Virus record (IMG/VR): IMGVR_UViG_3300033984_000473
Coordinates: 168,932-232,931 of that record
Direction: 5' to 3' (one strand)
DNA length: 64,000 nt
Part shown: positions 15,444 to 47,858 of the stretch, one piece after another
Position numbering within the stretch: position 1 is the stretch's first letter
Layout: each line of letters begins with the position of its first letter
The notes under the pieces: generated by a model
Database searches by the model: none
What the model saw: the letters and a program-made list of their open reading frames with translations, nothing else
What the model was told of the DNA's origin: nothing
Translations under genes and position numbers: made by a program

Positions 15444-16187
15444 ATGAAACTTTATAAACTATACGAAACACTAATGTCCGAGGTTGAAAACCCTTCTTGT
15501 GTTTCTAAATTTGGTCAAGAATTATTTGGTGATGAATTAGGTGGTAAAGAACGCAATACACCGATTGAAAACAATTACTTAGAATTGATTAAAGATTTCA
15601 CTGATAATATGTATGGTGAAGAAACTACAAATCAATTCATCAACGCTCTTACCAATCTTAAAAATTGTATGAGCCAATATCCAGATGTTCTAGTTCCAGA
15701 ATCATCAACAGTTTATAGAGGAACGATGATACCATTGACTTACTTCATCAATAACAAACAACCCATAGATATTCAAGGCCCTAACAATTATACTTACAAA
15801 GCCAATAGTCCAGTTCAAAGTTGGTCAATAAGCTACGAAACAGCTTCTAATTTTGGTTCACATGAAACTCTTAATGAAATTGCTAATCATATTGGTCACG
15901 TAGAAACTTCTAGTAGAGAAGACTTGGCTAGATTATTACAAACACTGGTAAACGAGGATATGCGACTTTCTTTTGTATTTGCTTACAAAACATCACCAGA
16001 TGAATTTATCTTTAAATCAGAAGCTTTTAGCAAACTATCTAAAATGGAACATGAAGTTGAACTTATTAGATTTACCAACAAACCAATCCACGTAACCGCA
16101 TATTTCAACGATAATGAGGACAATCATTTATCCGAAGATTCAATCAATTTAATAAAAGCAATTAATGAAGCTATTTCGTTAAGATAA
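15444..16187 (+). CDS. putative ADP-ribosyltransferase (R-S-E type)
   Basis: VYRG, QSWS and EHEV motifs; TATTTATA upstream. Confidence 0.55.
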   Translation: MKLYKLYETLMSEVENPSCVSKFGQELFGDELGGKERNTPIENNYLELIKDFTDNMYGEETTNQFINALTNLKNCMSQYPDVLVPESSTVYRGTMIPLTYFINNKQPIDIQGPNNYTYKANSPVQSWSISYETASNFGSHETLNEIANHIGHVETSSREDLARLLQTLVNEDMRLSFVFAYKTSPDEFIFKSEAFSKLSKMEHEVELIRFTNKPIHVTAYFNDNEDNHLSEDSINLIKAINEAISLR

Positions 16188-16224
16188 CTTGACTATTTAA
16201 AAAAAATTGTCTATAATTGTATCT

Positions 16225-16554
16225 ATGATTGGATATGTTTACCTTTTATTACAAATTGATACCGATGGCCACGAGAGCCACAAGATTGGTATTACCAAAA
16301 ATGACCCACAACTTAGGGTTAAGCAGCTGCAAACGGGTAACCCAAACAAAATAAGTCTTTTAAGAAAGTATCAATCCAAGAACTACTTGAAGGTGGAACG
16401 TTGGTTACACCGTAAACACTCTGGCTCCAAAACTGAAGCCAAGAATGAATGGCGTGTGCTTGCCGATGAATTCGTTTTCTCATTCATAAGCGATTGCCAA
16501 GAAGCTGATGAAACTATCAATTTCCTATTGGAAAATAACTCGCTGTACGATTAA
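16225..16554 (+). CDS. GIY-YIG / T5orf172-family protein
   Basis: YVYLL..KIGIT..RVKQLQTGNP..EW. Confidence 0.85.
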   Translation: MIGYVYLLLQIDTDGHESHKIGITKNDPQLRVKQLQTGNPNKISLLRKYQSKNYLKVERWLHRKHSGSKTEAKNEWRVLADEFVFSFISDCQEADETINFLLENNSLYD

Positions 16555-16555
16555 A

Positions 16556-17059
16556 TTAAGTATTAAAGATTTCTTTAAACGCATCTAAGAAAGCTTGTTT
16601 AGCTTCAGCATGTGTCATACAAACAAATTCTTCATTGTCAACCAAAACCATGTTTTCCCACTCAATGTGTAACATGTCAGCATCAGCTTTTTTAACTTCT
16701 ACATTCAATGGATAATCAAAACCATATTTAGCTCCAATCAATAACATCAAGTTATTCTCATACAACTTATAGTCTGGAAGTCTAGATTTGATTGGTGTTG
16801 GCATGTCAAGCATATAAGCTTCACTAGCATCGTGCATAAGAGCCGCTTTTTTGTTTTCTTGCGATACTCTAGCAGCACAATTAACGCTGTGTTGAGCAAC
16901 AGAATAATGACGGTTCAAATGACCACCAAACCTTGGCATTGAAGCCAAGGCATGTGCGATATCTTCAATACAAATCATATCCATCTCTGGTTCAAAAATG
17001 TTAACGAAAAGCCCAGAGTTTGTTCTTATCGTATCTTTTGGGGCATCAAATATATTCAT
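16556..17059 (-). CDS. HD-domain phosphohydrolase (YfbR/YfdR-like)
   Basis: RFGGH..YSVAQHS..LMHDASEAY..D. Confidence 0.9.
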   Translation of the reverse strand: MNIFDAPKDTIRTNSGLFVNIFEPEMDMICIEDIAHALASMPRFGGHLNRHYSVAQHSVNCAARVSQENKKAALMHDASEAYMLDMPTPIKSRLPDYKLYENNLMLLIGAKYGFDYPLNVEVKKADADMLHIEWENMVLVDNEEFVCMTHAEAKQAFLDAFKEIFNT

Positions 17060-17062
17060 AGT

Positions 17063-18274
17063 TTAAATGTTAGTTGCCGAGATTGGCAAGTTATAGAAAT
17101 CTCTTCTTATTGTTACTAAAAGTGCATCTACTAATCCTGGGTTTACCTTGTTTGGTAAATCAGATTTATCAAATACCTCGTCCATATTTGCTATGGCTTC
17201 ATCGGCCATGACAATCAACCCATCTAAATCAACTTCACCACGTCTAATCTTAAGAAGTTCTTCAGCATCTGGTCGTCTAACGATGATACCTTTACCTTCT
17301 CCGATTTCTGTAGCCATATTGATAAGTCGCATACAATGCATCATGTTCTTACCATCAATCTTTTGACCATGACCTTGAACTTCAACGTATCTGGTTACAT
17401 TTCTTTTATCTAACCATTCTTGGTATTCTTTAAAGTCTTTACAGTGCTCTGAATAACCATCTTTGTTATAAACGATTGTACTGATTGTTTTTTCACCTTT
17501 AGGAATACTAGAAAGACGTAGTTGATTTGAGATACCATAGTTAATGACCCCATCTTCATCTTCATGACCAGTGTTTACAAGTCCTTTATATCCAAGACCC
17601 ATTGGCTTACCAGCATCTTTTAGAACAGCCTTTCTTTGGTTGCGTTCTACTTCTGAAAATTTATCAGAGTGACACATTTCACCAACACTGTCATAAAATA
17701 AAGCATACGTATCCCTAGCGTTAGGTATGTTTACAGCACCTATGAATTTTTCATCGTACTTCCCAGAGTTCCATATTTTCCATGGAATTGATTTCTCACC
17801 TTCAAGTACATAACAGAAATCCAATAGGTCTTTACGAACTACTTTGTCCTGTTCCCAGTTTTGTTTCTTGTTAAGTCCTTTGGCTTTTTTGATTTGCTGT
17901 CTAGCGTAACCACCGAAAGAATCTTTACACGCTTTGGTGATGAAATCTTCCTTGTGAGCAATGATAATGTCAAACAAAGGGTTCTTTGTGACGATACAAT
18001 CTTCTGGACTGTTAAGGAGCTCAAGAACAGTTGGGTTGTTTGTACTCATAAGTTCTAAGAACCTTTTAAGTTCCCAACCCGTCCAATCTTTATTGATATT
18101 CAACTGTTCAACATATCCAGTACCCAAGATATTATCAATAGGCAAGATGTAAACGAATTTTTTATCCACATCAGACGTTGGTGTCTGCGTACCATAGGCT
18201 TGACTACCAATAATGCATTCAAAAAGAATCAATCCATTCTCTTTAAGGTAATCGTATGTAATTTTCTGTGTCAT
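17063..18274 (-). CDS. Pol-beta superfamily nucleotidyltransferase (YcgL/RlaP-like)
   Basis: GSQAYG..SDVD, NPTVLE, KNMMHCMRL. Confidence 0.85.
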   Translation of the reverse strand: MTQKITYDYLKENGLILFECIIGSQAYGTQTPTSDVDKKFVYILPIDNILGTGYVEQLNINKDWTGWELKRFLELMSTNNPTVLELLNSPEDCIVTKNPLFDIIIAHKEDFITKACKDSFGGYARQQIKKAKGLNKKQNWEQDKVVRKDLLDFCYVLEGEKSIPWKIWNSGKYDEKFIGAVNIPNARDTYALFYDSVGEMCHSDKFSEVERNQRKAVLKDAGKPMGLGYKGLVNTGHEDEDGVINYGISNQLRLSSIPKGEKTISTIVYNKDGYSEHCKDFKEYQEWLDKRNVTRYVEVQGHGQKIDGKNMMHCMRLINMATEIGEGKGIIVRRPDAEELLKIRRGEVDLDGLIVMADEAIANMDEVFDKSDLPNKVNPGLVDALLVTIRRDFYNLPISATNI

Positions 18275-18357
18275 ATTCTTAATTTTTAACAAAGGTATGT
18301 ATAATTTATTAAACTACCAAACATTTTTACATTTTAATTCCAGTAAGATAGATAAAT

Positions 18358-19116
18358 TTACTTAAATTTACGTTCTACTTCCATCCTCTTTAAACATTCG
18401 AAAGGTGTTTCGTTGGGGTTAAGTGTATAATTACATCCAATAACACCACCCTTCCAACTACCAGTTCTTTCACCAACTTCTTCATTAAAGTTTATCTCAA
18501 TAACATGTCTAGTTTTAATTTGTAAACCAAACCATCTCTTCCAATATCTTTTAACTTGATGAATCGTTGCTTTTATATTTTGAATGTCGCCAGAATTTAA
18601 TTGATAAGCATAATCATGCACTTCATATAATATTTTATCGGACCATTTATCTGAATCCCAAAAATCATCACCTTTTTCTTCTTTTTTCCAACCATCTTTA
18701 AGTAAGTATTCAGTTTTTAAATGGTTATACGCCCATGGAAAATCAAATGATAGTTTATGGAAACCTCTAACCCAAAATTGGTTTGGAAATCCACTGTCAA
18801 TATGGTAAAACATAAGACCATATGTTTTTGATTCAGAAGTATTACCTCTACCAGTATCATACGGTAAATGAATATATAAATTACCCCAAGAATAAAAACA
18901 TAATATCAACGATATCGGTATTAACCATAAACTAATGAATGGTAACACTAATAAAAGTAACGTTGTTAAATTAGTGTTAATTTGTGGTCTAGGGTCGAAA
19001 TAACCATTATTTTCATATGTTAAATAGAAACCATTACCTTTACTACTTTTAGGATAAAAAGACACCCATTTTTGGTAATCTTCAGTATCTGCATTTGTGA
19101 ACTTAAATTTTATCAT
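18358..19116 (-). CDS. hypothetical membrane protein
   Basis: 252-aa ORF with one hydrophobic segment; own promoter. Confidence 0.7.
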   Translation of the reverse strand: MIKFKFTNADTEDYQKWVSFYPKSSKGNGFYLTYENNGYFDPRPQINTNLTTLLLLVLPFISLWLIPISLILCFYSWGNLYIHLPYDTGRGNTSESKTYGLMFYHIDSGFPNQFWVRGFHKLSFDFPWAYNHLKTEYLLKDGWKKEEKGDDFWDSDKWSDKILYEVHDYAYQLNSGDIQNIKATIHQVKRYWKRWFGLQIKTRHVIEINFNEEVGERTGSWKGGVIGCNYTLNPNETPFECLKRMEVERKFK

Positions 19117-19586: not shown

Positions 19587-20217
19587 GGTTTGCACCAAGT
19601 GTGGTGAAGAAAAAGCATTGTGTGACTTCTATAAGCGTTTAGATAGTACTACTGCACAATGTAAAGTTTGTCTAAAAGAATTTAATAAGAAAAGATATCA
19701 TGATGACGCTGAGAAGAATCGGGAATACAGTAGAAACTACCGAAAAGCTAACCCATTAAAAGGTCGTGAAGATGTTAAGAAATGGCGTGAAGCTAATCCA
19801 GATAAACATAAAGAAGCTCAAGCTAAATGGTTAGCTAAGAATCCAGATTACGAGAAAGAAAGAAGTAAACGTAGACGTAAAGAAACACCACACATATTTG
19901 CATGGCGTGATATGTTAAAAGACTCATTAAAAAGGTTAGGAAAGAAAAAAGAAGGTCATACAATAGACCTTCTTGGATATTCTGCTCTGGAATTAAAAGA
20001 ACACATAGAATCATTATTCACCGAAGGTATGACTTGGGATAACCATGGTGAATGGCACATAGACCATATAATCCCAGTAATTACTTTTGACCCAGCAACA
20101 CCTTCTAGTGTTGTAAATGCTTTGAGTAACCTACAACCATTATGGTCTACTACAAGAGAGGTAAATGGTGTTATACACATTGGAAATTTAAACAAAGGAA
20201 AACAATTAATTCATTAA
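19576..20217 (+). CDS. HNH homing endonuclease with N-terminal Zn finger
   Basis: CTKC..CKVC, WHIDHIIP..NLQPLW..N. Confidence 0.85.
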   Translation: MESKVCTKCGEEKALCDFYKRLDSTTAQCKVCLKEFNKKRYHDDAEKNREYSRNYRKANPLKGREDVKKWREANPDKHKEAQAKWLAKNPDYEKERSKRRRKETPHIFAWRDMLKDSLKRLGKKKEGHTIDLLGYSALELKEHIESLFTEGMTWDNHGEWHIDHIIPVITFDPATPSSVVNALSNLQPLWSTTREVNGVIHIGNLNKGKQLIH

Positions 20218-20412
20218 ACCAGTATAATCCTTGTTTACGTTTAATTGTTCAACGTAGCCAGTCCCTAAGATGTAATCTTGTGGTAGTATATATACAAACT
20301 TCTTATCAACATCAGATGTTGGAGTTTGTGTTCCGTATGCTTGTGACCCAATGATACATTCAAATAGGATAAGCCCGTTTTGTTCTAAGTATTCGTGTGT
20401 TATTTGTGTCAT
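20206..20412 (-). pseudogene. truncated duplicate of the nucleotidyltransferase 5' end
   Basis: GLILFECIIGSQAYGTQTPTSDVDKKFVYILP identical to 17063-18274; cut at the HNH gene end. Confidence 0.85.
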
Positions 20413-20459
20413 ATTCTTTATTTTTAACAAAGGTAAGTATAATATTTTGATTTTCCTAA

Positions 20460-21793: not shown

Positions 21794-22768
21794 TTATGCT
21801 AGTCTAAGATTCTTTAAATAACCTTTTAAGAATGAGTTGGTTGGTCCACCAATTTTTTCAACCCACTTTTGATAGTTGGTTTCGTTTCTTTCTTCCAACT
21901 CAGTTTCAACTTTCTTAGATGGTTTACGTGTTCCATAAGGTAATTTTTCTTCTTGGAATTCTGGGTATAGTTCTCTGTTGAAAACTCTTTCATCAACCAA
22001 GAAAACAAATGCTGTTAATTGGTCACCCAAATCTGGTTCAAAAAAAACACCAGCTTTAACACCAATTTTAGTTATTTCTAAAAGATGTTTATTTAAAGTA
22101 CCAAAACTTTCTTTATTTCTATTAGTCGTACCACCATTAAGTATGATAAAAGTTTTATCTTTTGTTGCCCATTTATTGTATAATTTTTGCATTGGCTCAA
22201 GACCTAATGTATTTTGTTGGTATTCAACAACTGCATGTCCAAATTGAATTCCTTGTTGAATTGGACTAAGATTGTAAGGTACTAGACCATACATTCTATA
22301 TTCCAAATACATGTCGGTTTTTCTTTGCAAAGAATTGTATTTTACCTTGCATTGGATTAACGCATCCAAAAATTCATTCTTAGGCATAGTCGGAAATTCA
22401 AAGAAATGTTTTTCTTTTGAACCATACCATTCTAAAGGCCATTCGTTTATATCTAACACTCTTAGGTTAGCTTCAACACACCATTCGTAAGGTGTTTTTA
22501 ATTCTATTTCTTTTTGTACCATTTCTTTTTTATATTCTTTAAATTCTTCAAATGTCAACGCAGTTGTACCATTTCTTTTAATCCATTCTTTTTTATTCCG
22601 AAGCCAATCTCTATTGCTAAAAGGAGACCCTTCAATATGTCCACCCAAACCTAGAAATTCATTCCTTATTGATACCAGTTCTAAAAGACAATTAATACTA
22701 TTATATGTTTCATCTGGACTGATATCATAGGTTTTCTTTAACCAAACTATGTACTCTACGTATTCCAT
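21794..22768 (-). CDS. N-terminal unknown domain plus Pth2-like peptidyl-tRNA hydrolase
   Basis: IQQGIQFGHA..W..KTFIILNGG..FFEPDLGDQLTA. Confidence 0.65.
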   Translation of the reverse strand: MEYVEYIVWLKKTYDISPDETYNSINCLLELVSIRNEFLGLGGHIEGSPFSNRDWLRNKKEWIKRNGTTALTFEEFKEYKKEMVQKEIELKTPYEWCVEANLRVLDINEWPLEWYGSKEKHFFEFPTMPKNEFLDALIQCKVKYNSLQRKTDMYLEYRMYGLVPYNLSPIQQGIQFGHAVVEYQQNTLGLEPMQKLYNKWATKDKTFIILNGGTTNRNKESFGTLNKHLLEITKIGVKAGVFFEPDLGDQLTAFVFLVDERVFNRELYPEFQEEKLPYGTRKPSKKVETELEERNETNYQKWVEKIGGPTNSFLKGYLKNLRLA

Positions 22769-23330: not shown

Positions 23331-24623
23331 TTAATTTCCTATCTCAACCAAATGAGATACAGTACATTGTGAAGAATTATACACGATGTATTCGTTATTT
23401 TTTAAATCAGCACCACCTTTGGCAAATACAGAATCATAATCATCTTTTTTCAAGGCTGTGTGTGATAATGAATAACAACTAGAAGTATGATGAAGGATTT
23501 CCTTTTGATTACCCAAATGTACATCAAACAATGCTAAGAAAGCTTTATCATCACCACCTTTGGTCCAATAAGAACCTCTCAATGATGAATAACCGATTGA
23601 TTTCTGAGCTTTATCGGCAAAATAGATTCCATCTCCAAACATAGAACCAGTATGAACTGCACCAGAAGGTCTGATAAGTAACCCAGTTTGTAAAATGTTA
23701 AACCAGTTCTCATTTCTAGAACCATGCCAGTAAAGTCTTCTTTTCTTAACCTTAGCAGTTTCATAGTTCTTATCAAATATTTTTTGGGTTTTATTATTAA
23801 CCACCTTGAATACTCTTTTGACTTGATGTGCGTTAGGTCCCATAAGTTTCGTAACCAAAGCAAGTGTTTCTTTATCTTCCTCAACTTCAACACTAAGACC
23901 CATTTGGTCAAGTATAGTAACTTGGTCAACATGTTCTTCTTCTGGAGCTTCAGCTATTGCTTTTTGTTGTTTAAGTAGTTGTACTTGTCCAGCCATTGTA
24001 TCTAGTGTAGATTGTTCTTGACCAATGAATTTCTGAGCATTTTCAAGTGCTTTGGCATCATTAATTTCGTTTACAAGGTAATCACGTACATTATCCATTC
24101 TTCTAGGGATAATTGTATATAATTTAAGTAACATATCATTAACCAATTTCTTATCCACATCTAGAACCATGATAGCACTAATTCTATCTATGATTTCTTG
24201 GGCGGCAAGTACTTGTTGCTCAGATACAGCATCTTGCGTTACTTTATAATTTCTTTGAATAGATTTGTTTGCAAATGACATTAATTCATCGATAAGCTTT
24301 TTAACAGCTGAGTTTTTGATTTCTTCAGTTTTTTGTGCAGTCGCTGCTTTGGTTGCATCGTCAATAACTGGTTCTGCTAGGAATTCAGTTACATCAGTAT
24401 AACCTTTTTTATCAGAAGTTTTCTCTCTAAGGATTTTATCCCATTCATGTCTAGATTTGAATACTGTAGTCATATTTTTACCTACTCTACCATATTCACA
24501 TTGTATTCTACCATCGGAAAGTTCTTCCATGATATAAACCTTGTTACTATTGTCGGTCATTCCGTTATCAATAGAAACATGTACTAATTTAGCGTATCTT
24601 AAACCGTTTTCTTTTGTTATCAT
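23331..24623 (-). CDS. poly(ADP-ribose) polymerase (WGR + regulatory + catalytic domains)
   Basis: YGRVG, LYTIIP, WHGSR, MFGDGIYFAD..KS.GY, NEYIVY (H-Y-E triad). Confidence 0.9.
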   Translation of the reverse strand: MITKENGLRYAKLVHVSIDNGMTDNSNKVYIMEELSDGRIQCEYGRVGKNMTTVFKSRHEWDKILREKTSDKKGYTDVTEFLAEPVIDDATKAATAQKTEEIKNSAVKKLIDELMSFANKSIQRNYKVTQDAVSEQQVLAAQEIIDRISAIMVLDVDKKLVNDMLLKLYTIIPRRMDNVRDYLVNEINDAKALENAQKFIGQEQSTLDTMAGQVQLLKQQKAIAEAPEEEHVDQVTILDQMGLSVEVEEDKETLALVTKLMGPNAHQVKRVFKVVNNKTQKIFDKNYETAKVKKRRLYWHGSRNENWFNILQTGLLIRPSGAVHTGSMFGDGIYFADKAQKSIGYSSLRGSYWTKGGDDKAFLALFDVHLGNQKEILHHTSSCYSLSHTALKKDDYDSVFAKGGADLKNNEYIVYNSSQCTVSHLVEIGN

Positions 24624-24755
24624 TTTAATTTATTTTTACAAAGGTAATAATTTTATTTGGATTATACAAATATTTTAATAAGAATCTGGACCATCACTAC
24701 AAATGTGGCGTTCCCACCATGCTTTAAAAACTATTTTGAATCTTGCCCACATAAT

Positions 24756-24959
24756 TTACCACTTTTTAGTAACATCGTCAAACAACGTTGCGTTATTAGT
24801 TATCCAATCATAAAATAATCGTTGCATGTTTGGTGGAACCATATGTCCATTAACATAAACAACATCAATTACAATTTCAATTTCTTGACCCGCTGGAAGC
24901 GGCATGTCTTTAGCAACTTCGGCTGCTTTCTTAAGTCTATATACTTTATTTTGTATCAT
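24756..24959 (-). CDS. hypothetical protein
   Basis: 67-aa ORF. Confidence 0.55.
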   Translation of the reverse strand: MIQNKVYRLKKAAEVAKDMPLPAGQEIEIVIDVVYVNGHMVPPNMQRLFYDWITNNATLFDDVTKKW

Positions 24960-25026
24960 AGTTTTTTTATTAAAAATACGTTATTTGTAGAAAAAATAAA
25001 GGGTTTTACCCCTTTATTTCTTGGTT

Positions 25027-26082
25027 TTAAGCTAACTTAAAGAACATTTCTCTTACCTTTGATGAAACGTATTTGTTTACATCTTTAGGTTCAATATTAT
25101 TGGCTACCATAGTATCCATTTCTTCTTTGGTAATGTCAGTTACAACCCATCTAATAACATCACCCATCTTTTTAACATCGATTGGTTCGTCATTTGGGAA
25201 TACATTTTCAAGTGATTGATTGAAACGACTTTCAGTAACTGCATACTCAACAAATTTTTGGATAGAACCCAATTTCTCAACATCAACACTCGCTAGAGTT
25301 TTAACCTTAGAGCTAGAGTGCTTTTCACCCTTAACCTTAAATCTATGAACGATACCGTTTACATTGGTTGACCAAACAATACCCTCACCGATTCCAGAGA
25401 ACCCAAAAGCTTTCGCTACAGGACATTCTTCTTCAACTGCGATAGTTAACTCGGATAATTGGTTTTGAATCAATTGAGGCATGTTAAAATCGATATCGAT
25501 AGAGAACGTTGGGAAATCATCAATATTGTAGATGTTATCATCTGGAGACTTTAAATAATGGTAAGGAATCCAGAACGCTGGTTTTAATCTAGCTTCTTCT
25601 TCACTATAGGTGATAGGTGAAACCTTAACACCAAATATAAAGAATGATTTAGGTAAATTACAAATACCAACACCTTTTTGAATGTTACCACCACACCATT
25701 CACCATAAATCGTAACGATGTTATTTCTAGCATCAAATAAATTAAACGAATTTATCTGGTTAGCAAATTTTTTAAACGCTTCTTTATGTGATTCAACAAA
25801 GAAAGCAAACCCAGCATTGTCTTTTTCTATTGTAATGATGTTCTCACGTGATTGTGCCCAGTATTCACTTTGTGATTGGTCATAACCATAGTTAAAAGAT
25901 ACAGCAGCATTGGTTCCGTGTAATTTCACAGTACCTTTAAACGTAAGCACTGGCTTAGGAAGATTTGGGTCATAAATAGCATCACCATTCTCATCTAACC
26001 CGATGTAGTTGTAATGTCTATTTATGTTCGTCACGACAGTTCTAAACTGTTCAATTGACGGGAATTTAATCATTTTTTTCAT
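25027..26082 (-). CDS. RNA ligase (Rnl2-like)
   Basis: KLHGTN motif I, YGEW, GEGIVW, FKVK. Confidence 0.85.
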   Translation of the reverse strand: MKKMIKFPSIEQFRTVVTNINRHYNYIGLDENGDAIYDPNLPKPVLTFKGTVKLHGTNAAVSFNYGYDQSQSEYWAQSRENIITIEKDNAGFAFFVESHKEAFKKFANQINSFNLFDARNNIVTIYGEWCGGNIQKGVGICNLPKSFFIFGVKVSPITYSEEEARLKPAFWIPYHYLKSPDDNIYNIDDFPTFSIDIDFNMPQLIQNQLSELTIAVEEECPVAKAFGFSGIGEGIVWSTNVNGIVHRFKVKGEKHSSSKVKTLASVDVEKLGSIQKFVEYAVTESRFNQSLENVFPNDEPIDVKKMGDVIRWVVTDITKEEMDTMVANNIEPKDVNKYVSSKVREMFFKLA

Positions 26083-26877: not shown

Positions 26878-28374
26878 TTATTTTGCTTTTAGCGTTTTAG
26901 CCATATTTTCAATTTCAATACATGATTCAAGTGTATCACATGTATCTTTGTCAGTTCTTAACTCAACAATCGATGGATGTTGTGTTGACCAACCCTTGTC
27001 AGTTTCTGAAAGACCACAACATCTAATTTGCACAACAGTACCCATTAGTTCGTCTTGTCTAGCAGTAACATCAGCCATCATAGCTTCAGTCATTCCACCA
27101 GGAGCAGTCTTCAATTTACCACACTCACTTTCCAATTGCAATACTGATATTACGTTCTCATTCTTGGTACCTTTGGCACCATAATTGAATCCGATGATTC
27201 TTAAATCCATATCCATCTCAAGTTTCATCTTGATTTGGTATGTTGGTTTACCATCCTTCCAACCAGCAGAAGCTTGTTTGATTATAGTTCCTTCTAGACC
27301 TCTATTTTGAGTATCCATGAAGTGTTCCATCGCTTCCTCATAAGTTCTAATGAATCTTGTTTCGATAAGGTCAACTTGGTCATGACTTTGCCCTTCAAGT
27401 CTTTTTCTAAGTGTGTTGTATCTTTCGTGGTATTCAGTGTCAGATTTAAAAGCGAAATACTCATCAACGCTAATCATATCCCAAACTGTAAATCTTAACT
27501 TATCCAAAGCATCAGCCATCGGCCCATGTTTATCTTCAAATGCTGCAACTTTCTTCGCAGTTTCAACTTCACCTCTTTCGTCAGCTTTCTCAACGATATC
27601 CATGATAGAGTTTACCATACCATTGGCAATTGTTCTTTTAACACCATCAATCGTTAACTCGCCATTAAGCACACAATCTTCCAATTGAGATAGTTCTTCT
27701 AAAAATTTGGCACCAGTAAGTGTAGATACTTCACCTTGTCTAGAAATCAATTCAACTTCACCACTTCTTATGATGGCGTTACGATATGTTCCATCAGCTT
27801 TCACTTGTGACATAACCGCTTTACCTTTCTCGAATAACTTAATAGCACCTTTCTCAGAGAATGACTTAGCACCTTGATATGGAGTTTCTTCAATCAATTT
27901 GGGTATAACTTTGTTGATTCCAGAATCCATTCCGATTTTAAGGTTCTTATCTATGATACGCTCAATAACATAAGCATCGTCAGCATCTAAATAAGATAAG
28001 ATATTTAATAAGAAATCGGTAGCTGAAGCACCAGTATAAGTTCTATCAGAAAGACGAGTCAATTCTTCTATCGATTCTGCTAATGTTAGTGTTGTTTCAA
28101 CATTAGAGTATTGTGGAATCTGTTTGATATAGAATTTGATTCTAGGTGAATGAGCCAAATAGATTACTCTTTTTAACAACTCATTATCTTTGTATTTTGA
28201 TAAGACTTTTATCTTATCATTTTTACCACCAACAGCAGCAATTTCATCAAGGATGTTTTTGATTGTCATTTTTGGGTGTTTTTTTTGGTACTCAGCTTTA
28301 GCTTTTTCCATGTTTTTCATTTCGAATTCGTGTATAGAAGCTTCTGCTCTATCGTTTTTCCAATCTTCACTCAT
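26878..28374 (-). CDS. lig: ATP-dependent DNA ligase
   Basis: KADG motif I, LNGEL, EGTIIK, KMK, OB fold. Confidence 0.9.
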   Translation of the reverse strand: MSEDWKNDRAEASIHEFEMKNMEKAKAEYQKKHPKMTIKNILDEIAAVGGKNDKIKVLSKYKDNELLKRVIYLAHSPRIKFYIKQIPQYSNVETTLTLAESIEELTRLSDRTYTGASATDFLLNILSYLDADDAYVIERIIDKNLKIGMDSGINKVIPKLIEETPYQGAKSFSEKGAIKLFEKGKAVMSQVKADGTYRNAIIRSGEVELISRQGEVSTLTGAKFLEELSQLEDCVLNGELTIDGVKRTIANGMVNSIMDIVEKADERGEVETAKKVAAFEDKHGPMADALDKLRFTVWDMISVDEYFAFKSDTEYHERYNTLRKRLEGQSHDQVDLIETRFIRTYEEAMEHFMDTQNRGLEGTIIKQASAGWKDGKPTYQIKMKLEMDMDLRIIGFNYGAKGTKNENVISVLQLESECGKLKTAPGGMTEAMMADVTARQDELMGTVVQIRCCGLSETDKGWSTQHPSIVELRTDKDTCDTLESCIEIENMAKTLKAK

Positions 28375-28379
28375 AATTT

Positions 28380-28544
28380 TTATTTTGTTGTTAAATAATA
28401 AAACCCAACTACTATAATTCCTAGTATGATTACAGTTGCAATAAGGCAACCACAACCACGTTTGTCATTTTTAGATTCTGAAGCGGTTTCAACCCCAGCT
28501 TCAATCACACCTACTATTAGTTCTCCGATTATTTCGTGTGGCAT
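28380..28544 (-). CDS. small membrane protein (54 aa)
   Basis: MPHEIIGEL..GCGCLIATVIILGIIVVGFYYL; promoter upstream. Confidence 0.55.
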   Translation of the reverse strand: MPHEIIGELIVGVIEAGVETASESKNDKRGCGCLIATVIILGIIVVGFYYLTTK

Positions 28545-28586
28545 AAGTTATATTTTATTTGATTTCTAGATTACAAAGGTACAAAA

Positions 28587-37177: not shown

Positions 37178-37387
37178 TTATAAACTATCCATTCTTACTT
37201 GTCGAACAATCTCACCTAATCTACAATCACCTTGCCCAATTATTTGAGTACATAGACATCTTCTAAGAAATGGAATTGTAGGTTGTTTATTTTGTCCCAC
37301 TAGCATGGTGAGTTTCCCAGCTGGAATTCCATTCTTCATTAATTTGTCCAACATAGCTAAGCCAGTTGGTAAATAAGTATTTTCCAT
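37178..37387 (-). CDS. small protein resembling a RecA/DnaB N-terminal fragment
   Basis: LPTGLAMLDKLMKNGIPAGKLTMLVG with no Walker A lysine. Confidence 0.45.
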   Translation of the reverse strand: MENTYLPTGLAMLDKLMKNGIPAGKLTMLVGQNKQPTIPFLRRCLCTQIIGQGDCRLGEIVRQVRMDSL

Positions 37388-38325
37388 TATGCTGTTTTTT
37401 TGATTTCGGTTACTATTCCTTTAACTGCGAAGCTTTTAATCTTTTGCCATTTTGTAATATCATTAGACATCACTGGCTTACCACCTTCTGGATTTATCGC
37501 AATCGTTATGTGTGGTATTACGTTGGCCGATGGATAACCTTCTACCTTAACAGCCATGGCCATATCACTAAGTCCTATCGCTTCAACATATAATGTTACT
37601 TCTTTACCCAAGTCTTCTTTGTTTGGAACACCCTTACCAAAAACGATTGTCATGTGGTGTGCGAATACTTTCCAACCTTCTGGGATATATTCACCAACTC
37701 TAGACAACAACGCCCCTATAGAGCCATTATCCAAAACAACAGCAGAATACAATACATTTGATTCTTTGTACATATCCTTAGACTCTAAAACACTTTTAAG
37801 TGTTAATGAACCTTGACCTTTGTGACTTGCTATCATTTTTTCTATTTTATCTAATGGAACTCCGTGTGTGTTTCTTTCAGCTAAACCTTTGGCATCTAAC
37901 CCACCAGTACCAACATCAATAAACTTGATATTTCTATCAGCTAATCCCATTTCCAACGCAGCTTTAACCAACGCTTTGGATTCGTTTTGTTTGATGTTTG
38001 TATTATCTAAGATAACTGGAGATATACCTTCTCTGATTGATTTGATTGCGTTTTTAAGGTTTGTTGAGTGAGCTCTCGATAATGGTGTGAAATCTTTAGA
38101 TTCTTTCATCATTTCGAAAAAAGCATCATAATCACCATTAGCTTCAATAACATCATCAGTTGAATGGATTCTTCCTTCAGCTACTAGTTCTTTTGCTTTT
38201 GTTGATTTACCAGAACCTGGGATTCCACGCATAACGATAAGTTCTTGTGTTGGTCTAGAAACCAATACACCTAATGTGTTTTTGTCGATACCTTCCCCAA
38301 GTATTTGTTTTATATTATCTTTCAT
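37387..38325 (-). CDS. polynucleotide kinase-like P-loop plus 2H cyclic phosphodiesterase (RNA end healing)
   Basis: GIPGSGKST, DNTN, RNTHGVP; HMT and HIT motifs. Confidence 0.85.
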   Translation of the reverse strand: MKDNIKQILGEGIDKNTLGVLVSRPTQELIVMRGIPGSGKSTKAKELVAEGRIHSTDDVIEANGDYDAFFEMMKESKDFTPLSRAHSTNLKNAIKSIREGISPVILDNTNIKQNESKALVKAALEMGLADRNIKFIDVGTGGLDAKGLAERNTHGVPLDKIEKMIASHKGQGSLTLKSVLESKDMYKESNVLYSAVVLDNGSIGALLSRVGEYIPEGWKVFAHHMTIVFGKGVPNKEDLGKEVTLYVEAIGLSDMAMAVKVEGYPSANVIPHITIAINPEGGKPVMSNDITKWQKIKSFAVKGIVTEIKKTA

Positions 38326-38365
38326 TTGACAAAGGTACAACTTTAATTTCTAATTACCAAATAAT

Positions 38366-39034
38366 TTAAGAATAATATGTTTGATAAACATCGTTGGTTA
38401 AACCAAAGTCAATAAGTACAATGTCATCTTGACCATTTCTTTGTACAAGACCATAGCTATTAAGTCTACCAAAGTCACCAGCTAGTGCATCAATATTCTC
38501 CATGAATTCAGCAATAGAACCAATAAACTCATTTTCATCAAGTCTAGCTTTTACTTCTGGGTCCATAGTAAATATAGGTCTTTTACCTCGATTGATTTCT
38601 TTGAAGTTTCTTAGATATGCATTCAATTCATCAATAGTGCAACCATTAATTCTAACAAAGTCTTTTTTACTAACTTTTCTAGCCAACTCCATTTCAACCC
38701 ATAAATCATCTGGGTGATACATAAAAGTGTGTGCTAGTATTGGTCCAAAATAAGAATCTTGACCCCATTGTATTTCAACTTCATTTTGTGCAATTCCTTT
38801 TTGGTTTTTAGCTAACTTTAAAACCTTGGTATCATCAATCATATAAACGATTCTAGCTGAACCAGATGAAATTCTTTTAAGATTTTCTTCACAGTATCTA
38901 ACTCTTTCAGCAAATTTTGTAAGTGTTTTGAAATGGTCCATATCGAAAGCTGTTGGGTATTCCTCTTCCAAAAACGATTCAATAAGGTTATGTGTTAAAC
39001 TTTCTGTAACTCTTTTTTTGATTAAATTTTTCAT
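38366..39034 (-). CDS. protein kinase-like protein
   Basis: GSARIVY, VLKLA, NEVE, GD..NSYG, LIDFG. Confidence 0.65.
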   Translation of the reverse strand: MKNLIKKRVTESLTHNLIESFLEEEYPTAFDMDHFKTLTKFAERVRYCEENLKRISSGSARIVYMIDDTKVLKLAKNQKGIAQNEVEIQWGQDSYFGPILAHTFMYHPDDLWVEMELARKVSKKDFVRINGCTIDELNAYLRNFKEINRGKRPIFTMDPEVKARLDENEFIGSIAEFMENIDALAGDFGRLNSYGLVQRNGQDDIVLIDFGLTNDVYQTYYS

Positions 39035-39801
39035 TCTGTTTCTTTATCTTTTTCTTTTCTTTTATTGTATAACCAAACACCAAATGGTATTATCAACGTG
39101 CTTAATATCCATTGCCAATATTTACCTAAGAATAATGGGATTGTTTTAGCTGGATTTGATTTGATTTGTATATTATCAATATACACTGTTTCTTTCCTAT
39201 TACCATTTTTTATAATCGCAATAACAATTTTTAACTTAGCACTACCACTTTTTAATGGTGTTACATTCCAACTCCATTTTGTAATCTCATCACCGTCTTC
39301 AATCAATTGTACAGCATCATTATCTGGAACAATTGAGAATGCTTTATCATCTATTGGTGATGGGTCGACTAACTTAACATCCATAGTTTCAGTTATGGGA
39401 ATGGTAGTTGTTTTTACAACACCATCTAAATCTTCATAAATATTTACTGTAGTTTTAGATATTACCAAGGATACTTGATAGGTATCTCTAACGTTCATGA
39501 TTGTTGGAACATGATACGCTACGTGACCTTTATTTGTTGTAGTTTTTGTGTGATTATTTTTAATCTCGATTATTTGTATTTTTGAGTTTTTAATAATCGG
39601 TTTTGATGATTCTGAAGGAGTTGTTTTAGGTGTGATTACATCTGCACTAGTTCTTTTAATTTCTAGCATTTCAACATCAGACACGTTCATAATACTGTCA
39701 GTGTTAGATACTTCCATTGGTAATGGTTCAACCGATTTGGTTGGTTTTGAAGTCTTACACGACACCATTAAAACTAATATTAATAATACTAAATATTTCA
39801 T
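39031..39801 (-). CDS. lipoprotein with C-terminal TM helix
   Basis: Lipobox MVSC; WQWILSTLIIPFGVWL. Confidence 0.7.
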   Translation of the reverse strand: MKYLVLLILVLMVSCKTSKPTKSVEPLPMEVSNTDSIMNVSDVEMLEIKRTSADVITPKTTPSESSKPIIKNSKIQIIEIKNNHTKTTTNKGHVAYHVPTIMNVRDTYQVSLVISKTTVNIYEDLDGVVKTTTIPITETMDVKLVDPSPIDDKAFSIVPDNDAVQLIEDGDEITKWSWNVTPLKSGSAKLKIVIAIIKNGNRKETVYIDNIQIKSNPAKTIPLFLGKYWQWILSTLIIPFGVWLYNKRKEKDKETE

Positions 39802-39830
39802 ATCTATAAATATGTAGTTTTATATAAAAG

Positions 39831-41316: not shown

Positions 41317-41949
41317 TTATACTCGACCTAATCTCCAATTATCTGGGATTAAATAATCTTTTTTAATCTTTTTATTTTCACTACCATTTGTTACCCATCG
41401 ACTACCAAATTGTGAATTTGTTTCACCAGTTCCAGTACCTTTTTTTACTTTAGACATTATTTGTTTAGATTCTTCACTGTGTGTTTCACCTTCCCAATTT
41501 TTAATCCAATTTTTATCTCTAGTACCATCTAAATATTCTAATGTTCTCGCTGTTGATAATTTATTACTTTTTTTTTCTACCCATTCTGGGTCTTGTCTTA
41601 AAAACTTTTGTTTTTCGTTTGATTTAATCGCATTCAATTTTTGTTGTTCCGAGCTAAACCCACCAGTACCACCTTCTCTAAGGTTCATACATAAATCTTC
41701 TGAAATCAACTCTTTAGTAACAATCTCAATCTCTCTAAGAACTAACTCTTCCCTTGTTGGTAAAAACTCAAGTATTTCTTTTGTATGGTTTTCAATACCA
41801 TGTTTTCTTATTGAATATCTTAATCTTTTACCGCTTCCCATATAACCATCTTCCAGATTATACGCACTATGCATCCCTACATAATACCTTCCCGTTACAT
41901 TACATGTTGTTTTATATATGTAATGTATGTTTCTTTGTTTTCTTGCCAT
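41317..41949 (-). CDS. GIY-YIG homing endonuclease (paralog of 11729-12400)
   Basis: YKTTCNVTGRYYVGMHS shared with the paralog. Confidence 0.9.
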   Translation of the reverse strand: MARKQRNIHYIYKTTCNVTGRYYVGMHSAYNLEDGYMGSGKRLRYSIRKHGIENHTKEILEFLPTREELVLREIEIVTKELISEDLCMNLREGGTGGFSSEQQKLNAIKSNEKQKFLRQDPEWVEKKSNKLSTARTLEYLDGTRDKNWIKNWEGETHSEESKQIMSKVKKGTGTGETNSQFGSRWVTNGSENKKIKKDYLIPDNWRLGRV

Positions 41950-42789: not shown

Positions 42790-44013
42790 TTATCTACAAT
42801 TTACACCTCTAAGACCAAACATTGTACTTCCTAATGGTGAATATGTCTTTAATTGAATAGGATTCTTAACATCAGCTTCAACTGTAGCTATTGATGGTGG
42901 TTTAATTGTATAGAATAAGTAATCAGTTTGACCGCCAGCCCATAGTTTTTTTAGTTTATCTAAACCTTCTTTAACTTCTCTTCTAGTGTCTTTTTCTACC
43001 TTAAGATTTTTATCATGTAATATAAAGTCAATCAATTCTTCGTAGCTACCAAAGTGTTTAACATCTTGGTCTACATTTTCAAAAGCTTTTGAATTTTTGT
43101 TTGCAACGTATAATTCACTTAAGTTAGCAATATATAATGGTGTATAGTTCCATTCTTTAGCGTAAAGGTTTTTATCAGCATAGTACCTTGTATCAAAAAT
43201 AACGTTACCGTCTTTGATTAGCTCTAATCTATCTGGAATAGAACCAGGAGTCATCTCAAATGAACCGTTTCCAGTTACTGTAACATTATTGCTAATAAAA
43301 TCATTAGCCTGTGTTGCTATTCTACCTTTATTTTTGATTGAACCTAACGCACATGGTGTTGTTCCAGCATCAAACACTTCTACTGTTACATATTGGTGTT
43401 CAGTATATTTTGAATCATCTCTATTATCTTCACCCCATTCTGGACCACCAACAACAGCATCAACCTTAACTTCAACATTATCCATGGGTACATTTGTTAA
43501 AATTAAATCTTTTAGTATATCAGCACGTTTTTGTGCTAATTCTCCTTCTCCAAATCCTTGTTGATTTGGGACCTTAGATTCTGAAGCTGTAATATAGATT
43601 ACATAATTGGTATCTGGGTTGCTAGCTATATAGTTTTTAATCTTATTGATATTCTCTTTTTGATAATTACTTTTTAGATGGAATCTACCACTTTCAAAGG
43701 AATTGCTGAAGTTTACAGTTAATAAAGACTTGGATTTGGTTGATGAACCCATGTTGAACGGATTTACAGCTTTGGCCGCTGGTTTAGGTGTTGGAGCTTG
43801 TTGTGTTGTCGGAGCTGTTTGAGTTGGAGCTGTTTGTTGAGCATTGGCACCGATTCCACCACCTAAAGAAGCCAAACCAGCAGCTAAATTGGTTTTCCAA
43901 TCTTCTTCTAGTTCAGATGTGTTTTCGTTCACCATATCCTTTGAATTCAAATATCTTTGTTCGGATAATAAGTTAACCTTATTGATATTTAATTTCTTAT
44001 CAAATCTTCTCAT
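42790..44013 (-). CDS. hypothetical protein with OmpA-like central domain
   Basis: F.SG..L, ASESKVPN, LAQKRA, QYVTV; late motif upstream. Confidence 0.65.
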   Translation of the reverse strand: MRRFDKKLNINKVNLLSEQRYLNSKDMVNENTSELEEDWKTNLAAGLASLGGGIGANAQQTAPTQTAPTTQQAPTPKPAAKAVNPFNMGSSTKSKSLLTVNFSNSFESGRFHLKSNYQKENINKIKNYIASNPDTNYVIYITASESKVPNQQGFGEGELAQKRADILKDLILTNVPMDNVEVKVDAVVGGPEWGEDNRDDSKYTEHQYVTVEVFDAGTTPCALGSIKNKGRIATQANDFISNNVTVTGNGSFEMTPGSIPDRLELIKDGNVIFDTRYYADKNLYAKEWNYTPLYIANLSELYVANKNSKAFENVDQDVKHFGSYEELIDFILHDKNLKVEKDTRREVKEGLDKLKKLWAGGQTDYLFYTIKPPSIATVEADVKNPIQLKTYSPLGSTMFGLRGVNCR

Positions 44014-44043
44014 ATTCTTTTTAATATAAATATCAATTTTATA

Positions 44044-44956: not shown

Positions 44957-45320
44957 CTTCGTTGTTATCGGTATAATATCCTTCGTCCTCGTCTTCTTCA
45001 TCATCATCGTATTCATCTTCTTCTCCGATAACTTCACCTAAATAATCTTCTGTAATAAAAAACCCAAATTCACTATCAAATAGTTTCTTGAATGTTTTTA
45101 CTTCGTCTGCTGTTATTTCAGTAAAATCAACTCTAGATAAAAGGTCTTCACCACTGGTAAAGTTTAATTCAGAACCGTCACTAAATTCATAGGTGAACGG
45201 CCATGTGATGCTAGATGCTAATTGTTCGTAATTTAATACTTCTCTGTCGTTCATGATTACGAAACCGTTGAGTTCGATGTCATCTGACCAATCGTTAAAT
45301 GTTGCTAAAAATTTTGCCAT
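44940..45320 (-). CDS. acidic hypothetical protein
   Basis: D/E-rich tail. Confidence 0.7.
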   Translation of the reverse strand: MAKFLATFNDWSDDIELNGFVIMNDREVLNYEQLASSITWPFTYEFSDGSELNFTSGEDLLSRVDFTEITADEVKTFKKLFDSEFGFFITEDYLGEVIGEEDEYDDDEEDEDEGYYTDNNEDEDYD

Positions 45321-45368
45321 AGTTAATATTTTTAAATAAATATACCCATGGCAAAATAAAAATAAAGT

Positions 45369-46529
45369 TTATTTGTTTAATAATTGTTTAAAGTTTTCAG
45401 TTTCCATTTGTTGAATCCTTTGACCCAACTCTGGTCCAGGTTTTAAGTCTGTATCCATCATTACTTCTGGTCCCGTAACTGTTAACTGAAACTTTAAGAA
45501 TGCGTCTAATAACTTAGAGTCAATTCCACGCAATTTGCCAAACATTTTAATCTGCTCTGGAGTTACACCAGCGTGCTTCTCAGCTTTTTTAAGTGTTACA
45601 GCTGTATCTACTGATAATTGTAACAAAGCAATTAAAAATGTTATTGCTTTTACTTCTTCTGCTGAGTATTTCAAGTTGTTTAGTTGTTTTCTCAAAGAAT
45701 CTAAGTTGTTTCTTTTCAATATCGTAGCAATTACGATTATTGGGTCGTTATTCTCAACAAAATCCTTATCAACTGCCAATCCATTGAAAACCCAGTCGAA
45801 CAATTTGTAACCATCAATCATTTGTAAGAATTTCTTAACCGATTTTGCCGAAGCAATACCTTTAAGGAATTCATCACGAATTCTCTCACCAGAAATACCC
45901 TCAAGACTAGCATCTTTAACCAACGCAGCGTGTGTATCTGGGTCTAAGTCACTTCCGAACCTTCCAGCAAATCTAATCGCTCTAAGGATACGCAAACGGT
46001 CTTCACCAAATCTATCTTCAGCAGCACCTACAGTTCTTACTATACCTTTTTTAAGGTCATCTACACCACCAACTAGGTCAACTATTTCATGTGTATCAAT
46101 ATCGTAAAACAAAGCGTTAATTGTAAGGTCACGTCTTTTAACATCACCAGCGATATCCGTAAAGCTAACAGCATCTGGTCGTCTACCACCAGACAAATCT
46201 TCACGGAATGTTGCCACTTCGTATTCGCCTTGGTCTGTAAACACATTGATTACACCAAAAGACTTACCTGTTGGTAAAGTTTTCAATCCAGCGTGTTTCA
46301 TCATTTCTTCTACTTTGTCTGGGACAGCATCGGTTGCTAAGTCGTAATCTTTAGGAGTTTTACCTAACAAAGCATCACGCACAGCACCACCTACAACATA
46401 CAACTTAAAACCGTTCGTTTTAAAAACGTCTTTGATTCCTTGTATATCTTCTGGGATTGGAATATCGAATTTGATTCGCTGTTCCATTATCTGCCCTTCT
46501 CTTAGTATTTGTCTAATCTCATTTTTCAT
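45369..46529 (-). CDS. cca: CCA-adding tRNA nucleotidyltransferase
   Basis: VGGAVRD..KDYD, RRDLTINA, EDRLRILRAIRF, ERIRDE. Confidence 0.92.
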   Translation of the reverse strand: MKNEIRQILREGQIMEQRIKFDIPIPEDIQGIKDVFKTNGFKLYVVGGAVRDALLGKTPKDYDLATDAVPDKVEEMMKHAGLKTLPTGKSFGVINVFTDQGEYEVATFREDLSGGRRPDAVSFTDIAGDVKRRDLTINALFYDIDTHEIVDLVGGVDDLKKGIVRTVGAAEDRFGEDRLRILRAIRFAGRFGSDLDPDTHAALVKDASLEGISGERIRDEFLKGIASAKSVKKFLQMIDGYKLFDWVFNGLAVDKDFVENNDPIIVIATILKRNNLDSLRKQLNNLKYSAEEVKAITFLIALLQLSVDTAVTLKKAEKHAGVTPEQIKMFGKLRGIDSKLLDAFLKFQLTVTGPEVMMDTDLKPGPELGQRIQQMETENFKQLLNK

Positions 46530-46565
46530 AATGCAAAGGTAATGAATTTATTTTTAATACGCAAA

Positions 46566-47858
46566 TTATTTACGTCTTTTTAATCTTTCGAATAATTGTC
46601 CTTGATGTAAAAGGTTTAAAAGGGTTTCTAAATTAACGTTGCCTCTTTTACCATCCATAGTCACATTATATTCGTTTGGGGTTTCAGCCCCAAAATTTAT
46701 CTTATTAACCGTAAGTTTTCTACCTTTATCAGTTTTGTATTCTTTATCCAGTTCTATCTTATGCTTAGCCAAAGCCTGTTTAGCGTTGTTGAACTTGGAA
46801 ACGTTTTCATCACCAATTTGGTCAAAATCATACCCTATTTCTGTTAAGTGTCTGAATATTGCTTCAATATCTTCTTCATCAGCATAATCAAAAGCATCAG
46901 CATCAAATAAACGTAAAACTTCATCTTCATCAATCTTATCTGGGTCTTTTTCATATACAAATCCTAAATAAACAGAACGTACATCAGAACCATTTCTTAA
47001 TGTGTTCAATGCGTTTTCTAATACTTGTGGTGTTGCATCGCTAGTTAACGCTTCTTCAAATATTTCACTATACCCACCAGCAGCTATATCTTCAGCACTG
47101 TTTATCAATATGAAATCCCAAAAATTATCATAAGCTCCTTGTAAAAAATCTGAAGCGTCACTATCTTCTAACACATTGTCAAAAAAGTAAGAAGCTTCAA
47201 CGGCTCTATCATTTTCATCCATAAGTTGGTTGCTTTCAAAATGTAATTGATATTTCTTGTTGTCGTCTTTGTTAACCAACACATACAAAGGACCATCACT
47301 ATTATAATGGTCAAACATGTTATTAGACTGTTCGGCAGCTGTACACCATTGAGTTCCTTTACCAATAAGACATGAAGCCCTTTCAGTTTTAGGTATCATT
47401 ATTAACCAATTATCATTCTCAAAAACCTTATCAATTTCATTTTGTTTTATTTGACGTATCTCATCATTTTTACTAGTAGGCATTGTTTCATCGCCACCTT
47501 CAAATTCTTTAACAACATCATATAAATCATTTAGATTTTTGAATCTGTTAATATCTCTAGATTCACTAGGTATTCTATTGATGAATTTATCGAAAAGTCT
47601 TAAGTATTCTTTAGCTTTATAGAAATCTTCCTCTTTTAATTGATTGGTTCTAATCAAGTTATATAACCATGTGAAATAACCCTTGTTAAAATTATCACCT
47701 TTTCTAGGGTATATGTCATTTAGTTTTTGGAATAAAGATTCATCACCTTTAAGTACTGGAAATTTGTTTACGTCAGAGTAAAACTTTGTCCACGCATCTT
47801 TAACTGTAATCTCATTGATTAGACCTTCTCTAAGTATTTGTTTGATTGTTAAGTTCAT
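46566..47858 (-). CDS. hypothetical late protein
   Basis: GTQWCTA..FDHY..GPLY..KYQLH motif; IKQILREG leader. Confidence 0.75.
   Translation of the reverse strand: MNLTIKQILREGLINEITVKDAWTKFYSDVNKFPVLKGDESLFQKLNDIYPRKGDNFNKGYFTWLYNLIRTNQLKEEDFYKAKEYLRLFDKFINRIPSESRDINRFKNLNDLYDVVKEFEGGDETMPTSKNDEIRQIKQNEIDKVFENDNWLIMIPKTERASCLIGKGTQWCTAAEQSNNMFDHYNSDGPLYVLVNKDDNKKYQLHFESNQLMDENDRAVEASYFFDNVLEDSDASDFLQGAYDNFWDFILINSAEDIAAGGYSEIFEEALTSDATPQVLENALNTLRNGSDVRSVYLGFVYEKDPDKIDEDEVLRLFDADAFDYADEEDIEAIFRHLTEIGYDFDQIGDENVSKFNNAKQALAKHKIELDKEYKTDKGRKLTVNKINFGAETPNEYNVTMDGKRGNVNLETLLNLLHQGQLFERLKRRK

Follow-up and report, generated by a model that had tools for sequence, protein, structure and literature searches.

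In phage T4, Alt and a handful of small inhibitors are the known bearers of the capsid-targeting tag. The prohead protease gp21 cleaves after L/I-x-E, and the first 10 residues of the internal protein IPIII suffice for packaging, residues 4 and 7 serving targeting and residues 8 and 10 processing (PMC9026906). The T-even internal proteins (IPs) are diverse defence proteins and have only this capsid-targeting sequence in common (PMC3012670). Alt is a packaged ADP-ribosyltransferase, and both 2H domains and InPase domains occur in proteins which are predicted to be packaged, the latter among the domains of "polyvalent" proteins (PMC5512222). In the head ejection proteins gp53 and gp54 of SPN3US and gp93 of phiKZ, a gp21-like protease cleaves behind a Glu, for gp93 at SLE-13 (PMC5694885). 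Here we describe a short leader at the N-termini of otherwise unrelated proteins encoded in a 64,000-nucleotide stretch of viral DNA (IMG/VR record IMGVR_UViG_3300033984_000473, positions 168,932 to 232,931; the window), which is the final part of a 232,931-bp viral contig (33% G+C). For the comparison, T4 head protein sequences were taken from NC_000866, and a propeptide was understood as 10-20 residues ending in L/I-x-E (PMC9026906, PMC5694885). The leader is real and reaches well beyond the window; on balance it is probably a T4-type capsid-targeting propeptide that is cut by the prohead protease, and would then be a variant of the already known T4 device.

Four proteins of the window, a CCA-adding enzyme, a 430-aa protein, a kinase-2H enzyme and a 222-aa protein, begin with M-x(2-3)-I-[KR]-x-[IL]-L-x-E, and the N-termini quoted for them in a preliminary description of this DNA were all found in place (Table 1). 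The consensus is M-K-x-[F/x]-I-K-x-[IL]-L-R-E, 11-16 residues long, with the site LRE, LGE or VTE at residues 9-12 and often a second hydrophobic-x-E 4-5 residues on, at 14-16; examples are MKNFIKRLLRE↓Q, MKEFIQKLLRE↓S and ..IKQILRE↓G (the arrow marks the predicted cut). The genome-wide motif search proposed in the same description, carried out on the contig, added at least six carriers to the four of the window. At least 10 proteins, unrelated past some 15 residues, have the leader at residues 3-12, and internal copies are almost absent. When N-termini were scanned with a position-specific scoring matrix, 20 bits or more were reached by 6 of 598 candidate N-termini and by 1 of 6368 internal windows, a contrast which is partly circular, since the matrix was built from the same sequences; independent support comes from the hundreds of orthologs in which the leader is kept. 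The carriers had been called unrelated, and all-against-all BLASTP agrees with this, as no two carriers were similar past the initial ~25 residues; their Pfam matches are to different families. A P-loop ATPase (contig 50452-51141) was dropped from the set, its orthologs having no Glu at the site. No leader was found on RlaP, the Rnl1-like and Rnl2-like RNA ligases, the PARP-domain protein, the Acb3 homolog or the DNA ligase.

A weaker form of the leader had also been reported for a putative ADP-ribosyltransferase and for a 407-aa protein. Leader-like N-termini are present in both cases but they differ from the main leader. The one on the putative ADP-ribosyltransferase is similar to the T4 IPs (MKLYKLYE..MSE↓V; its orthologs read ..IKEG). 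The 407-aa protein has a second class of leader, MRRFDKKLNI..LSEQRYL, which over residues 1-31 shares 65% identity with the N-terminus of a 178-aa protein that is unrelated to it and encoded outside the window (contig 49490-50026, minus strand) by a gene with the late-type motif described below. A third shared class, ..ITE[SA]QL.RLK...hydrophobic-x-E, is found on the products of two small, unrelated late-motif genes (contig 54552-54893 and 56881-57348, both minus strand).

Across relatives the leader behaves as a module, which is kept, lost, swapped or found internally. It is present in 10 of the 11 IMG/VR orthologs of the CCA-adding enzyme, the remaining one starting directly with ..RIKFD. 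Among the 120 closest database homologs, about 105 have the leader, 3 have the second site only and about 12 (>77% identity) are leaderless; the first residues of these last (..RIKF) are those expected just behind the predicted second cut. In case of the kinase-2H enzyme ..ILRE was found in ~20 of 25 distinct orthologs, while 4-5 have no leader; leaderless orthologs of both enzymes occur at over 75% identity, and their N-terminus coincides with the mature end as predicted. The family of the 430-aa protein comprises 267 homologs and retains the leader down to ~45% identity. Its distant members show other N-terminal types (..SESYKNRLLEL.., ..IINESQF.., ..ILITESQL..), every one of which ends with hydrophobic-x-E just ahead of a conserved EIT..DAW block, and the ITESQL type is also found on two small late-motif genes of the contig. 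In one complete relative a 692-aa fusion carries the 430-aa homolog behind another domain, which has a leader too; the leader of the 430-aa part is still present where the two domains meet, as would be expected of a cleavage site. Synonymous divergence in the leader is high (pS ~0.56) while I5, L9, R10 and E11 are fixed, which indicates that selection acts on the peptide. In the AlphaFold 2 (AF2) model of the 430-aa protein, residues 1-15 form a detached helix with a predicted local distance difference test score (pLDDT) below 50, and the folded body starts from about residue 17; in the model of the putative ADP-ribosyltransferase residues 1-16 are likewise a detached helix with pLDDT below 50, with a confident body behind.

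A T4-type head module is encoded on the contig, including a prohead protease of the gp21 family at contig 28302-29027 (Peptidase_S77, PF03420; E = 3.8e-26 at 88.7 bits), a major capsid protein of the Gp23 family, a portal protein and a large terminase. Residues 58-68 of the capsid protein, ..LLTE↓NTTTNSS, have the appearance of a T4-like maturation site. The T4 gp24 sequence (NC_000866) reads MAKINELLRE and then STTTNSN, and the gp23 context is ..FLTE↓A. Since the capsid site matches gp24 on both sides of the cut, the gp21-like cleavage specificity is probably conserved in this phage. The gp21-cut propeptide of gp24 is also close to the leader itself, its C-terminal half ..LLRE↓S being nearly the same, and the TTTNS which follows the gp24 cut recurs at the capsid maturation site here; gp24 is a shell protein, unlike the internal cargo proposed for this phage. 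Two partial Pfam Gp23 matches in small open reading frames (ORFs) were rejected as unlike a capsid or vertex protein.

The resemblance to the T4 IPs is close in several respects. As in IPI, IPII and IPIII, a leader of 10-11 residues has an MK-x-aromatic start and a hydrophobic-x-E end, it is common to otherwise unrelated proteins (small ones in T4) and the phage has a gp21-type protease. The IPII and IPIII leader is MKTYQEFIAE, followed by A, as compared with MKNFIKRLLRE here. The cargo in the present case includes enzymes of 35-50 kDa, unlike the small T4 IPs, and this phage is a distant freshwater relative of roughly 360 kb. The T4 IPs are counter-defence cargo, and the cargo here likely is so too. 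T4 Alt, which is packaged and injected, and the putative ADP-ribosyltransferase both have a short N-terminal leader ending with hydrophobic-x-E, and a late-type motif lies 36 nt from alt and 20 nt from the gene described here; the two proteins differ in length (682 and 247 aa), and no similarity between their sequences can be detected. In SPN3US, the N-terminus that head proteins gp53 and gp54 have in common (MANFVKSKLARE.. / MANFVKSKLARESVE) is very close to the present leader (PMC5694885). SPN3US and phiKZ differ in that they belong to another phage lineage, the cut is at A/S-x-E and the propeptides exceed 100 residues; they are one more lineage, the third, in which a gp21-like protease goes together with a leader of similar look. 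The polyvalent proteins (Iyer et al. 2017) resemble the idea put forward here, being predicted virion-delivered enzymes with 2H, ADP-ribosyltransferase and InPase domains among others, but they are one giant fusion, whereas here separate genes each have their own leader.

The preliminary description placed the leader genes under or downstream of TATTTATA motifs. The sense-strand motif GATATTTATAnnnA does lie 11-38 nt upstream of the genes 46566, 42790, 15444 and 39031, and the CCA, 222-aa and kinase genes follow directly downstream in the same transcription units. The motif also precedes the genes for the prohead protease and for the large terminase. It is orientation-specific, being found at most 45 nt upstream of 27 genes, as against 7 for the reverse complement, and it extends to G-A-TATTTATA-n3-A with the final A in 27 of 27 sites. 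This late-type motif is present at 6 of the 12 leader genes versus 21 of the 412 other genes (Fisher P = 2.7e-5), and five further leader genes lie immediately downstream of a late-motif gene. The core of the motif in this phage is the reverse complement of T4 TATAAATA, not the identical word. A different, early-type sequence, TACCTTTG, is found 5 nt ahead of the ATG of the CCA gene and also before the ATG of the kinase-2H gene.

If the leader is a capsid-targeting propeptide, its amphipathic N-terminal helix would dock the protein on the scaffolding core during prohead assembly, the gp21-family protease would then cut after the leader Glu, and the mature protein would stay in the head and enter the next host cell with the DNA. 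Core binding, cleavage, packaging and injection are inferred; what the sequences themselves show is the motif, its restriction to N-termini, its modularity, the T4-like protease and capsid site and the link with the late-type motif. The T4-like protease, the capsid site, the propeptide match, the modularity, the detached leader and the late-motif enrichment all fit this part of the earlier proposal, while its wording, that tRNA-repair enzymes are packaged, was too broad. Only the CCA-adding enzyme and the kinase-2H enzyme are tagged, with a separate 2H esterase as a weak case; RlaP and the two RNA ligases have no tag, and most of the leader cargo is unrelated to RNA repair. The cargo is likely a counter-defence and takeover kit, consisting of the CCA-adding enzyme, the kinase-2H enzyme, the Acb1-like 2H esterase, the putative Alt-like ADP-ribosyltransferase, the GP88-family protein and several small proteins. 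Reviews on jumbo-phage RNA repair name such enzymes without mention of packaging (PMC7824862).

Several observations weigh against the propeptide reading. TAnnTTTG stands directly before the ATG of the CCA and kinase-2H genes in nearly all relatives. The match to the motif is poor in the 222-aa protein and in the contig genes at 54220 and 64306, and hydrophobic-x-E triplets abound in these proteins, which are rich in Glu and Lys. A gp24 homolog was not identified on the contig, which is ~64% complete. Finally, an injected repair pathway would be incomplete, because both RNA ligases and RlaP have no leader. Since a host-type TAnnTTTG directly precedes their ATG, the CCA and kinase-2H enzymes are probably made early; in some CCA orthologs the late motif stands instead of the early-type one. 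In T4, the late TATAAATA lies 35-36 nt upstream of alt and of gene 24 but is not directly upstream of ipI-III, and an early-type promoter is therefore compatible with packaging. That the CCA and kinase-2H enzymes are physically delivered is somewhat less likely than the propeptide reading itself, since both are probably also early proteins and the ligases of anticodon-loop repair are untagged; we regard it as possible, but at best evenly balanced.

The leader could instead be a common N-terminal helix with no role in packaging or cleavage, which binds some other partner; RNA, a membrane assembly site and a chaperone or Clp-type unfoldase are examples. The leader is a basic amphipathic helix, three of the carriers act on RNA or nucleotides, a ClpB-like gene adjoins two leader-like ORFs, and the early-type promoters at the CCA and kinase genes would suit such a function. 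However, the RNA link is absent for most carriers, and the leader is dispensable, as the leaderless orthologs demonstrate. This explanation, which we consider unlikely, does not account for the constant spacing between Met1 and the terminal hydrophobic-x-E, for the similarity to the T4 propeptides of gp24 and the IPs, or for the late-motif enrichment. Selection at the mRNA level, where an A-rich unstructured 5' coding region would enhance translation in a host without Shine-Dalgarno sites, is considerably less probable still: the genes do have A-rich first codons and no Shine-Dalgarno sites, and many proteins begin with MK[NKE], but the synonymous sites of the leader vary freely while the amino acids are fixed, the motif is absent from most genes of the genome and it is retained internally in the fusion protein. 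That the shared 5' ends are functionless leftovers of cassette shuffling, promoter and first codons having been copied between loci, can hardly be credited, in spite of ~19 nt of promoter-proximal sequence common to two leader genes and of the T-even IP loci being recombination hot spots, for the DNA identity of the leaders is no higher than their protein similarity implies, hundreds of orthologs, with identities as low as 45%, have conserved the leader, and shuffling is in any case compatible with capsid targeting and no true alternative to it.

The coordinates of the leader genes and of the features connected with them are collected in Table 1.

Table 1. Leader carriers and associated features. 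Positions are those of the window unless the contig is named.
Feature	Position	Strand	Remarks
430-aa protein	46566..47858	-	N-terminus MNLTIKQILREGLINE; best leader, ..ILRE↓G, residues 1-11; second site LINE↓I, 13-16; leader codons 47811-47858
Late-promoter-like TATTTATA, extended GATATTTATA	47874..47881	-	15 nt upstream of 430-aa gene; CCA gene next, codirectional
Predicted CCA-adding enzyme	45369-46529	-	N-terminus MKNEIRQILREG; sites LRE↓G (residue 11), IME↓Q (16); leader codons 46482-46529
Predicted kinase-2H enzyme	37387..38325	-	N-terminus MKDNIKQILGEG; leader ..ILGE↓G; leader codons 38278-38325
222-aa protein	38366-39034	-	N-terminus MKNLIKKRVTES; weaker leader ..VTE↓S, LIE↓S
Lipoprotein-like gene	39031..39801	-	Head of unit with 222-aa and kinase-2H genes; TATTTATA at 39805-39812
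Putative R-S-ExE ADP-ribosyltransferase, 247 aa	15444..16187	+	N-terminus MKLYKLYETLMSE; TATTTATA at 15424-15431
407-aa protein	42790..44013	-	Second leader class (residues 1-31); TATTTATA at 44025-44032
Leader carrier, 112 aa	contig 21897-22235	+	Contig-wide scan
Leader carrier, 179 aa	contig 24470-25009	-	Contig-wide scan; directly after capsid gene
Leader carrier, 121 aa	contig 117331-117696	-	Contig-wide scan
Leader carrier, 337 aa	contig 162191-163204	-	Contig-wide scan; Pfam GP88
Leader at internal Met	within contig 48252-49145	+	Contig-wide scan
2H/Acb1-like esterase	contig 161618-162181	-	Contig-wide scan; weaker leader; orthologs ..FK..LNE[AG]
Weaker leader candidate	contig 54220-54540	-	Contig-wide scan
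Weaker leader candidate	contig 64306-64863	+	Contig-wide scan

The CCA-adding enzyme matches PolyA_pol, the Pol-beta head domain (1.5e-35, starting from residue 43), and PolyA_pol_RNAbd, the RNA-binding neck (6.5e-7), both above the Pfam cut-off, and is assigned by these matches to the class II tRNA nucleotidyltransferases as a predicted CCA-adding enzyme. In case of the kinase-2H enzyme AAA_33 scored 41.7 bits and tRNA_lig_CPD 25.7 bits (cut-off 23); the protein has the P-loop GIPGSGKS at residue 34, HMT at 224 and HIT at 272, and is likely a P-loop kinase joined to a 2H domain, that is an end-healing or cyclic-phosphodiesterase enzyme. Its true ATG is taken to be at 38325, because the listed TTG at 38340 falls inside the promoter motif. 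Four of its diverged orthologs on related IMG/VR contigs (L086, L101, L108 and L110) have an in-frame TAA or TAG and one extra codon at about codon 36, so that the P-loop reads RGVP-stop-[L/P]-GSGK versus RGIPGSGK, with the frame intact afterwards; a fifth (L099) has a TGA plus a frameshift at the same spot, and the window copy is intact. These stops could be programmed bypass or read-through, or recurrent inactivation.

The 430-aa protein had no Pfam match, and Foldseek and VIA-align searches with its AF2 model gave no convincing fold, generic helical repeats with Z below 7 being the only result. Its Cys163, Cys172 and His206 are conserved, and its domain of residues 61-221 is also found inside a 1991-aa InPase-domain protein of a relative. 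The gene of the 222-aa protein overlaps by 4 nt the stop of the upstream lipoprotein-like gene. The protein has the motifs VLKLAK and LIDFG, by which it is possibly protein-kinase-like; it matched only phrog_4301, and its best hit in the PDB was the SteC kinase, which was not significant (E = 0.41). PDB sequence searches with three proteins gave nothing significant.

The putative ADP-ribosyltransferase had no Pfam match. Its R92, S126, E204 and E206, together with the leader E13, are invariant in 29 homologs, and the top Foldseek matches of its AF2 model were all ADP-ribosyltransferases, although weak ones (Vis with probability 0.99 and E = 3e-3, followed by cholera toxin A1, HopU1 and C3; TM ~0.35 for the best matches). 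We regard it as a putative Alt-like enzyme of the R-S-ExE type. The 407-aa protein had an OmpA-like match (E = 5e-4) short of the Pfam cut-off. The GP88-family matches in actinophage genomes were all annotated as "hypothetical" and uninformative on virion location.

Beside the ClpB-like gene (contig 45698-48229), the ORF at contig 48252-49454 (plus strand) has an internal ..IKNLLREA at residue 126 and a C-terminal ..LIKRLIRENIK before the stop. Its homologs in two relatives have a different arrangement, with the motif at domain junctions, which may reflect polyprotein-like processing or gene fission and fusion.

The contig is assigned to a distant T4-like jumbo phage of fresh water with a genome of roughly 360 kb, its own completeness being estimated at ~64%. 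Judged by the capsid protein, the isolates closest to it are Flavobacterium phage vB_FspM_immuto, with 41% identity over the C-terminal 40%, and Rhodothermus phage RM378. Three relatives whose genomes are complete (353-367 kb, with terminal repeats) have the same prohead protease at 47-59% identity. Metagenomes from lakes and other fresh waters contain near-identical DNA; when 12 kb were compared by megablast with phage isolates, the only matches were of tRNA size. A virion proteome was not found for the nearest isolate, immuto. The genes have no Shine-Dalgarno sites, and TAnnTTTG, usually as GTACCTTTG, precedes many of them. Since we take TAnnTTTG to be a promoter type of the Bacteroidota, these two features make a host from this phylum probable. 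Contig-wide, GTACCTTTG stands 4-6 nt before many ATGs, e.g. at window 46530-46545 and 38326-38345, and this short distance suggests that the mRNA leaders are very short or absent. The TTG of GTACCTTTG gives false upstream starts in ORF lists (38340, 32870 and 18292).

The window alone has 31 tRNA genes. ARAGORN found a tRNA with the anticodon CTA (amber-suppressor type, labelled Pyl) and one with the four-base anticodon agac, at 49168-49241 and 11307-11380, respectively, both on the minus strand; the genes studied for the leader gave no indication that stop codons are recoded. The window is dense in leaderless genes of counter-defence or repair (18358-19116, 23331-24623, 25027-26082, 31324-32448, 41317-41949 and 11729-12400), comprising an Acb3 homolog, a PARP-domain protein, Rnl2-like and Rnl1-like RNA ligases and two GIY-YIG-type endonuclease-like genes. 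The latter two have near-identical N-termini and lie amid tRNA clusters. A 74-aa ORF (20206-20430, minus strand) looks like a truncated duplicate of the gene for the RlaP nucleotidyltransferase (17063-18292, minus strand), which lies 3 kb away and whose promoter region and N-terminus recur in it.

Orthologs that naturally have no leader, or a different one, allow the idea to be put to a direct test. If it is true, M-K-x-F-I-K-x-L-L-R-E together with a gp21 homolog would be a simple sequence rule by which the injected proteins of uncultured T4-like phages could be predicted, and the leader would be a portable protein-packaging tag for phages of Bacteroidota. We propose tentatively, as the less likely outcome, that a clade of ~360-kb freshwater T4-like phages loads its heads with active CCA-adding enzyme, kinase-2H enzyme, Acb1-like esterase and ADP-ribosyltransferase by means of one portable tag, and that these enzymes, once injected, repair tRNA or destroy immune signals before phage genes are expressed. 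In that event the device known from T4 would also deliver tRNA-repair and nucleotide-degrading enzymes, providing at time zero of infection a counter-defence against anticodon nucleases and cyclic-nucleotide signalling that has not previously been described.

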